A DNA stretch of 63,983 nucleotides, counting the filler, from Neoconidiobolus thromboides FSU 785 (lineage: Eukaryota > Fungi > Entomophthoromycota), in NCBI GenBank assembly GCA_025603075.1. It is 12 parts of 12 records of this genome, joined end to end, with 100 filler letters (N's around TTAATTAATTAA, not from the genome) between each part and the next. Parts side by side here need not be neighbours in the genome. Positions count along the whole stretch, not along the records: positions 49,833 to 53,683 come from MU626801.1; 11 more parts are not named here. One strand, 5' to 3'. Both the position numbers and the translations under genes were made by a program. Below are positions 1,402-53,783 of the stretch, one piece after another (the stretch's first letter is position 1; each line of letters opens with the position of its first letter). A model generated the notes under the pieces. The model was given only the letters and a program-made list of their open reading frames with translations. It ran no database searches and had not been told where the DNA came from.

Positions 1402-1666
1402 ATTCGATACTTTTTCCCTAAATTTTTTATTTGTCACATTCTTGCTTATATGTTAGTCAATTTAATATTATGATTATCTATTGTTTAATATAATGACATT
1501 TAATTTAACAATTTAATGGTAAATTATATTTATACATATGACCTAAGTTTAAAATCGTTTTATAGTTATTAATTTAATGCCATAAAATCTTAAACTGATT
1601 ATAATGATGTATTCATTTTATTAACAAATAATAAACTATGAATGCGATCAAACCTATATTTTCACC

Positions 1667-2816
1667 TTATTTACGTAAAGCATGTGATTCCTTTTTGATA
1701 GCTTCGAGGTAAGCTCTTAAGTTATCAGGATTATGATTAGGTAACATACCATGGCCTAAGTTAGCAATTAAAGGTTGCTTGGCAATTTGGAATTTCTTTA
1801 GCATATCTTTAGCACGTTGCTGGATCACTTCGGGATTAGCAAATAAAACACAGGGATCTAAGTTACCTTGTAAAGTGTGGTTTTTGTTACCGATATGCTC
1901 AACAGCATATTCTGGATCAATAGTCCAATCCAATGATATAACTTCAAAGACGTTTTGGTCCCCAAGTTTTCCTAAAGCATAATGCGCACCTTTTGCGAAC
2001 AATATAAGAGGGGTGTCATATCCAAGCTCAACCAAATTCTTTTTAACTTCAGTACCAATTTGTAAAAGGTAAGGTAAAGAGAAAGTTTCAAAATCAGATG
2101 GACTTAATTCCCCAGCCCATGACTCAAACAATTGAAGCATTTGAGCACCAGCTTTAACCTGCTCAACCATATATTCAATTACAACTTTGGTTATACGCTT
2201 TAACAGCAAGTGGCTTTCCTCTGGGTGATTAAACAACCAACTTTTTGCATTTGAGTGGTTCGATCCGCTTTTACCTTCAATCATGTAAGAAGCTAAAGTC
2301 CATGGAGCACCAGAGAATCCGATTAAAGGTACTCGGCCATCAAGAGTCTTACGAGTTAAAGTGATAGCATCTAAAACATATTTTAAACTACTTTTGACAT
2401 CAACGTTTTTAACTAATTTAGTTTCAATATCACTTGGAGTTTCTAGTCTTTCTTCAAAGTGGATTCCATATCCAGCTTTAATTTCAAATTTTAATCCCAT
2501 TGCCTCACAGACAACTAATATATCTGAAAATATAATAGCAGCATCAAGAAGTCCATCATAACGATCTATAGGCTGTACTGTAACTTCACAGGCTAATTCA
2601 GGGGTACGACATACTTCATTAAAGTCATGCTTTGCCCTTACTTCTCTAAATTCTAAACTATAAAAAAAGTCATAAATAATTTTATGTCCTATTACCTGGC
2701 AGATATCTACCTGCTTGGCGCATTATCCATGTAGGAACTTTATCTGTAATCTCGCCTCTGGCTGTGCGGAGAATAAGATCATTTTTTAATGGCGGAAAAT
2801 CGGAGTCTTTTAACAT
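1667..2816 (-). CDS. HEM12: Uroporphyrinogen decarboxylase
   Basis: [13 protein letters not shown]...[12 protein letters not shown] exon, 43-nt GT-AG intron at 2653-2695, then [17 protein letters not shown] and ANLGHG motifs. Confidence 0.96.
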
Positions 2817-3309
2817 AATGAAAGATGAAATAAAAGGATGACTTCACTCCTTTTTTATACATTATATTTTATCCAATCATTGCTAACTAAATAACTATTT
2901 TAAACATTTTCAAACTGAAATACACTCCTTAAAATTGTAATGTTTAAAACGTTAACTTGTTTCATTTAAATCATCATATAGATGTTAATATTTGTCCATA
3001 AATAAAAAGGATCCCCATGTATAAATAAACGAAGATAGTTTAAATTATGTCTAAATATTAAAGCTACTATCATTAATTAAAAGTTTCAGTAATATGACAT
3101 TTTTTATAAAATTAATAAGGCTTTATATACTGTTCTATTTAATTCTACTAGATGTAAAATTTGCTTATCAATTTTTCTATCACAGTTTAATGTTTGATAT
3201 AATTATAATTTGTTTTTTTAAGCATCAGTCGTATTTTTTTTAAAACTTGGATAAAACTAAAATTATTCTATTTTAATCTATTTATTAGGATTAAAGTGTG
3301 TAACGTCTA

Positions 3310-49686: not shown

Positions 49687-50949
49687 TTAGATAACATTTT
49701 AATAAACAATACAATACAATATAATATAGTATNNNNNNNNNNNNNNNNNNNNNNNNNNNNNNNNNNNNNNNNNNNNTTAATTAATTAANNNNNNNNNNNN
49801 NNNNNNNNNNNNNNNNNNNNNNNNNNNNNNNNCAAGGTACGCTTTATAGTTTAATTTAGTTATTCTTTAAATTGATCATGTAATCTGACTTTTGATTTCA
49901 TTACAATATTATTCTATTTAGTTATTAGATTTTAATGATATTACTTAATCAAATTGATTAAATATACTTTAATTAAATTAAGTAGGAGTAGCTTAGTCAT
50001 GAGAAAAAAAGTTAATAAAATACGGGCAATTTTTTATCGCACGTTAAACTTAGAAAGTATGTTTTGAAGGATCACCAAAGACTTACAATTCATTTAATCA
50101 ATGCAACCCTAAAATTACAGCTAATGAAACGAGTATTGATAAAAAAACAGCCAATTTTTCGATTCATTATAATATTTGATAATTAGTAAAAATTAAGCTT
50201 AAATTAAGTATTAAAAGTTTAGGGAAAATATAAATGTATGTCAAAGTAATAGTATTGGCATATCATTGTCTTCATCAAAACTTTTTTTAGCTATCATTTA
50301 TTTAATAAGCTAAAAATTGGCTTCATTTTTTATTTTATTAGCTGAAATTTTTTGGGGAGTTACACTAGTCAAAGATGACTGACCACATTCTAAGCTTAGT
50401 TTGTGAAAAAATGACTCTAGCCTTCCCATTCCCAATTAAATTTTGCAGAAAAATCAAAACCTTAAATCTCCCGCTTTGTATTACTATTTCTATATTTATA
50501 AAATTATCTAATAGTACTACGCTCTTTTGTACTTTTTCTCGAATTTGATTTTAAGTATTATTTTTTTTATTAGATACAAACGGTATTGTATATATTTATC
50601 TTTGTTACGTTTTTCATATATATTCCTAATCTTTAGTTTCATATTTATTTTACTCAATTTTAGTCTTTATAATTTAATAAACTATTAATAATAACTCTTC
50701 ATATATTAGTTAAAGGTGTAATACAACTTAAAAAGGGTGTAATTACTGTTAACATCAAATAATTATAATAATAAAATTTTGAATAATGTAGGTATAACTA
50801 TTTAAATTTAATAAAAGTAAGATAAACGTAAGCCTAGATTTATTAGTATAAGGACTGATATTCGTTTTAAGATATTGAAAAAATAACCCAACTTTGATTA
50901 AAACAATCAATTAATCTATTAATTTGAATAACGAAAAAGTTCATAACAT

Positions 50950-51047
50950 GAGGATACATTTTTGTGTTTAAGAATTTTAGTAACAATTTTTCCACTCAAA
51001 TAGCACTTAAAAAATGGAAAAAGTAATGAAACCAAAAAAACATCACC
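50950..51047 (+). mobile_element. MITE family A copy
   Basis: TSD ACAT/ATAT. Confidence 0.87.
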
Positions 51048-51464
51048 ATATAAATTTAATAAAATAATATAAAACATAATTCCTTTATGCAATATAGTTT
51101 ATAGGCTGTTTCTGTACCTTTGAATTAAAAAAATTAACTGGTTTTAATTATTCTATTTTTACTTTTTACAACTATTAGAACAAATACTAATGATTAAATT
51201 ATATCCTAATTAAACCCTTGACTTATCTTATTATATTATTCATAATTATTCTTTATATGTATTTTTAACTTTTTGATATTTTAGGTTTTTATGATTTGGT
51301 TTAAGTTACTATTAATAAGAGGTATTTGTATATTAGTCAAGGGGGTAATATTTATTGATATGAAATAATTGTAATATAGAATAAATATTAGATAAAGAAT
51401 GATTTTTAATTAAAGATATAGGAATGCCCAAATTGGTTTCAGAATTTTCTAAAATCAATCAAAT

Positions 51465-51557
51465 GGGAGTGTTTTTTTTACTTCATTATTTTTTCCATCT
51501 TTTAAGCGCTGTTCGAGTGGAAAATTTGTTGGTAAAATTCTTAAATACAAAAATACA
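51465..51557 (-). mobile_element. MITE family A copy truncated by the N gap
   Basis: AAAT|GGGAG... consensus match. Confidence 0.85.
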
Positions 51558-52386
51558 NNNNNNNNNNNNNNNNNNNNNNNNNNNNNNNNNNNNNNNNNNN
51601 NNNNNNNNNNNNNNNNNNNNNNNNNNNNNNNNNNNNNNNNNNNNNNNNNNNNNNNNNNNNNNNNNNNNNNNNNNNNNNNNNNNNNNNNNNNNNNNNNNNN
51701 NNNNNNNNNNNNNNNNNNNNNNNNNNNNNNNNNNNNNNNNNNNNNNNNNNNNNNNNNNNNNNNNNNNNNNNNNNNNNNNNNNNNNNNNNNNNNNNNNNNN
51801 NNNNNNNNNNNNNNNNNNNNNNNNNNNNNNNNNNNNNNNNNNNNNNNNNNNNNNNNNNNNNNNNNNNNNNNNNNNNNNNNNNNNNNNNNNNNNNNNNNNN
51901 NNNNNNNNNNNNNNNNNNNNNNNNNNNNNNNNNNNNNNNNNNNNNNNNNNNNNNNNNNNNNNNNNNNNNNNNNNNNNNNNNNNNNNNNNNNNNNNNNNNN
52001 NNNNNNNNNNNNNNNNNNNNNNNNNNNNNNNNNNNNNNNNNNNNNNNNNNNNNNNNNNNNNNNNNNNNNNNNNNNNNNNNNNNNNNNNNNNNNNNNNNNN
52101 NNNNNNNNNNNNNNNNNNNNNNNNNNNNNNNNNNNNNNNNNNNNNNNNNNNNNNNNNNNNNNNNNNNNNNNNNNNNNNNNNNNNNNNNNNNNNNNNNNNN
52201 NNNNNNNNNNNNNNNNNNNNNNNNNNNNNNNNNNNNNNNNNNNNNNNNNNNNNNNNNNNNNNNNNNNNNNNNNNNNNNNNNNNNNNNNNNNNNNNNNNNN
52301 NNNNNNNNNNNNAACCAGATTTAATAAATTCAGGTTGTTATAATAAATAGCTATCTCAATATTCTAGTTTAATATTATATATATAA

Positions 52387-52447
52387 AACAATAAAATAAT
52401 AAAATAATAAAATAATAAAATAATAAAATAATAAAATAATAAAATAA
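52387..52447 (+). repeat. (AAAATAAT)n 8-bp tandem repeat
   Basis: About 7 units. Confidence 0.8.
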
Positions 52448-52503
52448 CAGGTAAAGTATATTTTGGTTATTTATTTAAAATGTTAAATCGTGAATTAATA
52501 TAT

Positions 52504-52605
52504 GGGGATATGTTCTTTTATTTAAGAAGTTCACTAGCAACTTTCCACTCAAATAGCGCTTAAAAGGTGGGAAAAGTAATGAAACCAAAAAACACCCCCC
52601 CCCCC
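52504..52605 (+). mobile_element. MITE family A copy with expanded terminal C run
   Basis: TSD ATAT/AAAT. Confidence 0.85.
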
Positions 52606-52691
52606 AAATATTGATTAGTTAACTTTAAAATCTAAGATTCTTACTTATAAATATAAAAACTATTAATTTAACTATTAATAAAAATAAATAT

Positions 52692-52826
52692 TGAGTTGTC
52701 TGAATTAGTTTCACTATTTTATTCAATTTTTAAAAAAAATTGTATTTTAAAAACTTCGCTTAAAATTCTATAAAATCAAACCTTTTATTAAAACAAAAGT
52801 ACCCAGATATAGTTCTAAATCATTCT
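52692..52826 (+). mobile_element. Family-B terminal unit (degenerate)
   Basis: ATAT|TGAGTTGTCTGAATTAGTTTCA...AGTTCTAAATCATT, colinear with 17744-17869. Confidence 0.65.
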
Positions 52827-53327
52827 ATTATAGTTTATACTGTAAGTTAGTTGAATTTCTACTAGATCTTAAATACATATTCTTATAAAACTTTATAGAG
52901 GAACATTTATTATTAACTGCTTTATAACTAACACTATAGATTTGCTATCAAATAAATAAACTATTTTAATATTATAATTACATTATTAATATATTGCCAA
53001 GTTATTAAATAGCTGCATGGAAGGGAGTGGTTAGTCCCAAAGCTATAATTAACCATCGCTATATAATACAAGTAATATAGTAATACTTTTTACTTATCAT
53101 TACAATTAATTATTCCTTGATTATTTATTAACTTGGATATTAATGATTTAAGTAATATTGACGTTCAATAATCTATTTCTATCATTCAACAAACTATCTA
53201 CTTGCTTAGTAAATATCGAAAAATTTAAATTCTCTGTTATTTTCGCAAGATAAGCTGGGATTGATCTTTTAATTTTTCTATTTTCTATAGACTCTATAGT
53301 TCCAATTAGAATTATGTCGCTTTTTTT

Positions 53328-53683
53328 TTATGTATTAGATACTGGATAACAATGTAGTTTATTGTTATGTTTAATAAAGTGTAAATACTTCTTAATGCCT
53401 TGGATCTCTATTCTTCTTTTTGTATTTTTGTTTCTTTTATACTTTTTAAAAATTATATCTGTTTTCCTATTATTAACAGTCGGGTTATTAATTTTATTAT
53501 GTTCGCAAATAAAAGCCTCAAATCTTGAAATTAATTGATTAATGTCTTCTATTTTACCTAACGCTTTAAAACTACTTTCCCATTTTGAAAGGTTTCCAAA
53601 ATGTCCATCAACTATACTTTTTCCATGATGCTCAGCAAAAAAATTAAGATTAACATCCAAACTACTATTTATTTTATGAATTT
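53328..53683 (-). mobile_element. Putative Sola-like DDD transposase, C-terminal fragment (frame open into the gap)
   Basis: FFAEHHGKSIVDGHFG = F-x4-H-x5-D-x2-FG, the spacing around the third catalytic Asp of Sola-type transposases as I recall it. Confidence 0.55.
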
Positions 53684-53783
53684 NNNNNNNNNNNNNNNNN
53701 NNNNNNNNNNNNNNNNNNNNNNNNNNNTTAATTAATTAANNNNNNNNNNNNNNNNNNNNNNNNNNNNNNNNNNNNNNNNNNNN

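Follow-up and report, generated by a model that had tools for sequence, protein, structure and literature searches.

A Sola2 transposase tail, probably from a dead copy, within an old high-copy repeat of Neoconidiobolus thromboides

Introduction

A minus-strand reading frame emerges from an assembly gap in the genome of Neoconidiobolus thromboides FSU 785 (MU626801.1) and points towards the end of a repeat, with several short repeats lying close by. This raises the question of whether the frame is the end of a transposase gene and, if so, whether it belongs to a working element. The first-pass annotation of the window (the whole stretch of 63,983 nucleotides, filler included, in which the locus lies) proposed the 3′ part of a Sola-type master element that mobilises its smaller neighbours. 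The evidence described here leads to a more modest answer, in that the locus is an ordinary Sola2 DNA transposon copy, decayed and cut short by the gap. The reading as a whole, namely a Sola2 tail in an old high-copy repeat that ends at about 52693, with the copy probably dead, is held with high confidence.

The Locus and Its Setting

The DNA analysed consists of positions 49833–51558 and 52313–53683, with an N gap between them. The GC content ranges from 18 to 26% across these two segments, in which no tRNA genes were found, and the sole tandem repeat of the piece is (ATAAAATA)8 at 52383–52447. The surroundings of the transposase frame are made up of miniature elements (MITEs) and repeats, without other genes. 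The features discussed below are collected in Table 1. Within 51209–51349, there is also an inverted pair, ATTAAACCCTTGACTTAT / ATTAGTCAAGGGGGTAAT, the arms of which are separated by 105 bp. The right-arm region recurs at 50673–50723 as a 51-nt direct repeat (76%), and this may be a further small family of repeats whose termini are G/C runs.

Table 1. Features of the locus, in positions of the window.
Feature	Position	Strand	Basis or remark
MITE copy	50950–51047	+	GGGG/GAGG...CCCC, ~100 bp
MITE copy	51465–51558	-	cut by gap
MITE copy C, 102 bp, GGGG...CCCC	52504–52605	+	adjoins repeat spacer
Low-copy spacer, MITE to repeat	52606–52692	.	contig depth
Candidate element terminus GAGTTGTCTGAATTAGTTTCAC (read inward)	52693–52714	+	depth step
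Non-coding 3′ region of repeat	52693–53150	-	high summed depth apart from the 53095–53140 dip
Frame continuation, 59 codons	53151–53327	-	collinear with poorly conserved C-terminal tails of relatives
In-frame TAA, probably premature	53328–53330	-	same frame open 59 codons beyond
C-terminal 117 codons, predicted Sola2-type DDD transposase gene	53331–53681	-	profile match and Sola2_DFa-2 match
Third catalytic motif N-L-N-F-F-A-E-H-H-G-K-S-I-V-D-G-H-F-G	53595–53645	-	invariant columns in comparison with relatives

The Minus-Strand Frame and the Third Catalytic Motif

The transposase frame is truncated on its 5′ side by the assembly gap at 53684 and stays open from there to the TAA at 53328–53330. 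Its translation is exactly as quoted in the first-pass annotation. When 1.84 billion representative proteins were scanned exhaustively with HMMER, 75 relatives were obtained at E<1e-3, and the best full-length ones have 31–42% identity to the fragment. A family profile was built from 12 longer relatives and has 443 positions; the fragment matches positions 269–374 of this profile with 94.2 bits (E 6.8e-29). In view of these 75 relatives and this profile score, the frame is no chance ORF. No second segment of the piece matches the family profile in any frame.

The spacing F14-x4-H19-x5-D25-x2-F28-G29 is found in the fragment, and these residues are invariant or nearly so among 13 relatives. The alignment with the same 13 relatives gives N13, F15, H19, G20, K21, D25, F28 and L50 as the invariant residues of the fragment, and every invariant residue of the third motif is retained in alignments with relatives. 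The Asp of the motif is encoded by a GAT codon at 53607–53609. It is the third Asp only that the window holds, as the first two Asp motifs would fall in the N gap.

Placement in Sola2

For Sola1-1_AP, Sola2-1_HM and Sola3-1_HM, the RNase H cores have been printed in Majorek et al. 2014. Among these three cores, the pattern ..DFAEN.. / ..SDD.THD.. / ..TDGC..Q[YF]KN.. / ..NFFATSHG is displayed by Sola2 alone (Majorek et al. 2014), and it is mirrored by the family to which the window's fragment belongs. The third-motif blocks of Sola1 and Sola3 read ..ERGHTQS and ..NEPCRGKD, respectively (Majorek et al. 2014). By inspection, both differ from the third motif of the window, ..AEHHGKSIVDGHFG, which has the Sola2 form. 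In addition, VIVLMDFKENIALGMGPEE, FFWSDGAKHFKS and WQFSAQYHGKSDVDRHFADLS occur in the published Sola2 transposases of two dictyostelids, Dictyostelium fasciculatum and Polysphondylium pallidum (Bao & Jurka 2013, PMC3627910).

The comparison with published Sola2 proteins made use of two 60-residue stretches. BLASTP of the fragment against the 60-residue third-motif stretch of Sola2_DFa-2 gives 13 identical residues of 23 (E 3e-7), while hhalign of family profile A3 against the first-Asp block of DFa-2 gives a probability of 98.5% (E 3.5e-15, 47 columns). On account of the printed cores, the dictyostelid sequences and these two matches, the fragment can be assigned on sequence grounds to the Sola2 transposases, as a member of a compact branch. 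The Sola-type identity first suggested for this 3′ part thus stands, and is made more precise as Sola2.

The Transposase Family and Its Fold

A transposase with an RNase H fold cuts and rejoins DNA by means of metal ions bound by a trio of Asp residues. The full-length relatives of the fragment are 480–640 aa in length and have three invariant Asp-centred blocks in common. The first block is D-F-K-E-N...G-G-G-P-x-E, the second is W-S-D-x-G-x-H-F, and the third is N-[FY]-F-x-E-x-H-G-K-S-x-V-D-G-H-F-G. In the numbering of the relative P0025, the residues D281, D364 and D406 are invariant in family alignment A3. Residue D25 of the fragment aligns with D406 of P0025, and the earlier reading of the F-x4-H-x5-D-x2-FG spacing as the third catalytic Asp motif is therefore correct.

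The AlphaFold2 model of P0025 has a mean pLDDT of 77.6, and the value exceeds 85 across most of the core. Residues 275–420 of this model form the succession strand-strand-strand-helix-strand-helix-strand-helix. Here D281 sits on the first strand, D364 immediately follows strand 4, and D406 opens the helix that comes after strand 5. As modelled, this layout is that of a canonical DDE/D core. A Foldseek search of the PDB with the P0025 model returns RNase H-fold proteins for all top matches: Argonaute PIWI, Mos1, IstA, ISCth4, TnsB, EndoV, RNase H1, RSV integrase and Tn5. VIA-align superposes the model on the catalytic cores of a retroviral integrase, Mos1, Metnase and Sleeping Beauty with Z 10–11.6 and an rmsd of 2.6–3.0 A over 133–170 residues. 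The RNase H fold anticipated in the first-pass annotation is thus what the structural matches of this relative return. According to the model, a DDD triad on an RNase H-like fold holds at the level of the family, the window itself contributing the third Asp.

A Pfam scan of the fragment gives chance-level matches only (p25-alpha, DUF3463), and in the scan of 12 relatives none scores above the cut-off. DUF7869 (PF25273) reaches E<1 in 2 of the 12 relatives, the best being P0057 with 20 bits (E 5.6e-4), where the gathering cut-off is 26 bits. In the protein atlas, the fragment has DUF7869 clusters as its neighbours, and structural neighbours include the DUF7869 protein A7RT39 along with large C2H2 proteins. 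Judged by sequence, the family appears to be related to DUF7869 yet to lie outside the current Pfam model. A profile search of PDB sequences gave no match.

It could be argued that the fragment belongs to another RNase H-fold group, such as Sola1, Sola3 or a Ginger/retroviral-type integrase. Relatives in the AlphaFold DB are automatically named “Integrase catalytic domain-containing protein”, and retroviral integrases rank highest among the PDB matches. However, fold matches at Z 10–11 cannot tell the DDE/D groups apart, and no rve, integrase or other Pfam family passes its cut-off. The third motif matches Sola2 (…FFATSHG; dictyostelid …YHGKSDVDRHF), unlike the blocks of Sola1 (…ERGHTQS) and Sola3 (…NEPCRGKD). 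Membership of one of these other groups is consequently considered very improbable, and Sola2 is the assignment carried forward.

The In-Frame Stop and the Tail

The frame that closes at the TAA is open again for 59 codons beyond it. An open run of this length has a probability of about 0.003 from composition, and 5 of the 570 stop-to-stop segments of the piece are equally long. When the fragment and the tail are joined with an X at the stop, the score against the family profile rises from 94.2 to 99.4 bits and the alignment reaches position 430 of 443. Tails of comparable length are seen in the aligned relatives. As the frame is open for 59 more codons that are collinear with the tails of the relatives, the TAA is probably a premature stop as far as the sequence can tell. 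The 59-codon tail by itself is not significant against the family profile (-0.2 bits, E about 3), so that the TAA could also be where a shorter protein genuinely ends. A ciliate code, in which TAA specifies Gln, was considered and rejected; full-length relatives on contigs just as rich in AT have intact ORFs when read with the standard code.

The Repeat and Its Candidate Terminus

Copies of the repeat were surveyed by placing Logan contigs from four public runs (X1–X4) on 52313–53683 (1.37 kb), with 1,475–3,180 contigs placed per run. Individual contig depth in X1 is about 450–640. The mapping suggests that the copies of the repeat at 52681–53683 number in the hundreds, the summed depth not being equal to a copy count. 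The contigs indicate copies that are mostly 85–95% alike, with transitions accounting for ~80% of the differences. This level of divergence indicates that the repeat family stems from an old burst.

The homologous frame could in principle be a domesticated host gene derived from a transposase, given that the catalytic motif is fully intact across 117 codons. Against this, there are hundreds of diverged copies of the region, the homologous frame is interrupted by an in-frame stop, and the MITEs and repeats around it include no other genes. Domestication is therefore regarded as extremely improbable. Nor does the locus qualify as the autonomous master element that had been proposed. The ORF is truncated by the gap, a probably premature TAA lies within the homologous frame and the copies are mostly 85–95% alike; for these reasons, a decayed copy is the preferred reading.

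The boundary of the repeat is marked by a sharp change in depth. The summed depth at 52635–52680 is 708, 37, 128 and 15 in X1, X2, X3 and X4, respectively. In X1, it then rises from 708 to 194,034 at 52681–52726, and in all four runs the depth climbs at least 190-fold around 52681–52700. A repeat boundary at the position first noted is thus borne out. From the stop it is 636 bp to 52692, and the earlier figure of ~500 bp has to be corrected accordingly. One contig (X1 record 1) spans 52542–52753 with one difference. The repeat starts with GAG at 52693, and its AT-rich flank is TATT, or ATAT if T52692 lies inside the element. It has been reported that dictyostelid Sola2 elements have 12–22-bp terminal inverted repeats (TIRs) and AT-rich 4-bp duplications (AWWT), and that the 5′ end of DFa-2 starts with GAGCATTT (PMC3627910). 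The end in the window is compatible with these ends, the GAG likeness being one of three bases and not a test. The repeat end at about 52693 is most likely the 3′ terminus of the element. No second match to 52693–53094 or to its terminus was found in 49833–51558 and 52313–53683.

Inward of the boundary, the summed depth in X1 is 230,000–540,000 up to 53048 and 120,000–530,000 from 53187 to 53683, and the remaining runs are alike. Between these two parts, there is a dip at 53095–53140, where X1 falls about 50-fold to 7,910 against 77,000–540,000 on either side, with similar values in X2–X4. The dip reflects either a hypervariable stretch or the junction of two repeats. In the latter case, the Sola2 remnant would end near 53140 and 52693–53094 would be a separate, unrelated non-autonomous repeat (family B of the first-pass annotation) that adjoins it by chance or was inserted there; the boundary at 52693 would then not be the end of the transposase element. 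The drop in depth seen in all four runs favours such a pair, as does the fact that it begins just past the end of the extended reading frame. However, a contig from another copy (X1 record 3) bridges 52905–53177 at about 86% identity, and three joints, 53013>53458, 53097>53249 and 53159>53444, are found in three to four of the runs, as is expected of internal-deletion derivatives of one element. The dip may also reflect an indel-rich stretch, small indels being present at 53111 and 53115 in other copies, or the contig filter. Because of the bridging contig and the recurrent joints, one element with deletion derivatives is favoured, and two adjacent repeats are considered the less likely reading. 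The coding part and the 52693–53094 block are thus plausibly a single element, and it is as one element that they are treated below.

The 100-bp MITEs Beside the Transposase

Three MITE copies with GGGG/GAGG...CCCC ends, 80–85% alike, lie in the two segments. In the orientation of the element, their flanks are ACAT/ATAT, ?/ATTT and ATAT/AAAT, which for the most part fit the AWWT duplications reported for Sola2. The loose-end consensus after the MITE CCCC is often ATAT. The MITE core at 52543–52588 has the top summed depth (1.76 million in X1), about 3–5x that of the Sola2 repeat. The MITE ends (GGGGATATG... / ...CCCC) are unlike the end at 52693 (GAGTTGTCTG...) beyond the leading G-purine-G and the AT-rich flanks. 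A connection between the transposase and the MITEs is plausible, and the AWWT-like flanks constitute a lead.

Relatives in Other Genomes

The named members of the branch come from Smittium and Dentiscutata, and the remainder are metagenome or Logan contigs. A close copy, of more than ~45% protein identity, was found neither in the protein collections nor in the JGI metagenomes, so that a full-length element of precisely this family did not come to light. Searching a word index for proteins closely related to the fragment likewise returned none. The scan of the JGI metagenomes gives 29 loci, all with identities of at most ~38% over the full match, so these are not copies of the element in the window.

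Smittium megazygosporum (GCA_003086715.1; L034–L037) has four related Sola2-like copies that are 89–92% identical at the DNA level. Boundaries are common to these four copies only pairwise; no TIR or target-site duplication is visible in them, and N runs are many. In the gene models of this species, the Sola2-like copies are fused with unrelated parts, such as the Myb domains in P0120, and it follows that transposon copies have been mis-annotated as host genes. Other unusual gene models were also observed. P0040 (506 aa) combines a Sola2 tail (145–250) with a weak match to the Geminivirus-Rep catalytic domain (E 1.2e-4), P0048 (654 aa, from a beetle) has the third motif three times in tandem, and in P0001 (1417 aa) the fragment is matched in 13 separate stretches. 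These three are likely to be chimeric or read-through gene models.

Two loci, L001 and L002 (ENA ERZ25071726, 22–23% GC), encode the full-length proteins P0081 and P0092 in repeat-rich contigs, where they adjoin Ty3/gypsy-type pol genes and a Tc3-like HTH gene. These loci have only the ORF in common (70% identity). The dispersed 350-bp repeat around them contains internal CCATATGG palindromes. Its inverted copies, which flank both loci, were considered as element ends and rejected, as they represent a separate dispersed repeat. Terminal inverted repeats were also looked for at L003 and L004, and none were found.

Proposed Organisation and Significance

Taken together, 53681–53331 is the tail of a cut-and-paste transposase gene of the Sola2 superfamily. 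The segment present amounts to the last third of the gene and runs from the third-Asp motif (HGKSIVDGHFG) to the C-terminus, and the DNA-binding part would sit in the unsequenced gap together with the first and second Asp motifs. The coding region is followed by ~460 bp of non-coding DNA (458 bp to 52693) and then by the end of the repeat. In view of the probable premature TAA at 53328, this would be a dead copy as opposed to an active master. It is proposed that the boundary at 52693 is the true end of the transposon and that insertion would generate 4-bp AT-rich duplications, as in published Sola2 elements. Related intact copies may once have provided transposase in trans to shorter derivatives.

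The fragment itself is mechanistically ordinary. Its value lies in the assignment of a superfamily to an unannotated high-copy repeat of a very AT-rich genome, which aids both repeat masking and gene calling. A fungal survey has reported Sola2 in a single case only (PMC5751038). The compact branch of Sola2 lies well outside current Pfam coverage and occurs in Smittium, in Glomeromycotina and in many environmental eukaryotes. If the MITEs are driven by Sola2, the locus would offer a clear example of a transposase paired with its MITEs in a superfamily that has been little studied. A broader proposal can be put forward tentatively, with the odds rather against it: a compact Sola2 lineage (480–640 aa, EYHGKSxVDGHFG), un-named in the databases searched, may be widespread among amoebae of high AT content and among early-diverging fungi (Smittium, Glomeromycotina), may have been amplified to hundreds of copies in this host, and may be the source of thousands of AWWT-flanked 100-bp GGGG...CCCC MITEs.

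Comparison with Known Systems

The closest sequences found are those of Smittium (Kickxellomycotina), Dentiscutata (Glomeromycotina) and metagenome or Logan contigs, with 31–42% identity over the fragment. These relatives are unannotated, and their third motif is identical to that of the window. They differ in that they come from other hosts and have no DNA-level similarity to the window.

Among described elements, the dictyostelid Sola2_DFa-2 and Sola2_PPa-1 match in all three catalytic blocks, ..MDFKEN..G.GP.E, ..FWSD...HF[KR]S and ..[YH]HGKS.VD.HF..LS. AT-rich host genomes are common to the dictyostelid elements and to that of the window. The ends of DFa-2 start with GAG, and the boundary in the window too starts with GAG beside an AT-rich flank. 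The published dictyostelid elements are 10–15 kb in length, with a transposase of ~888 aa or longer and often with Fanzor1 aboard, whereas the relatives of the window's fragment are 480–640 aa and often reside on ~2 kb contigs. The locus itself differs further in holding the tail only, without Fanzor, and identity to the dictyostelid proteins is confined to the motif blocks. The order of the blocks is also the same in Sola2-1_HM of Hydra and in the animal DUF7869 proteins as in the window's family. In the third block, however, the animal branch reads ..SHGKG..DG.GG, whereas the window's family reads ..EYHGKS.VDGHFG.
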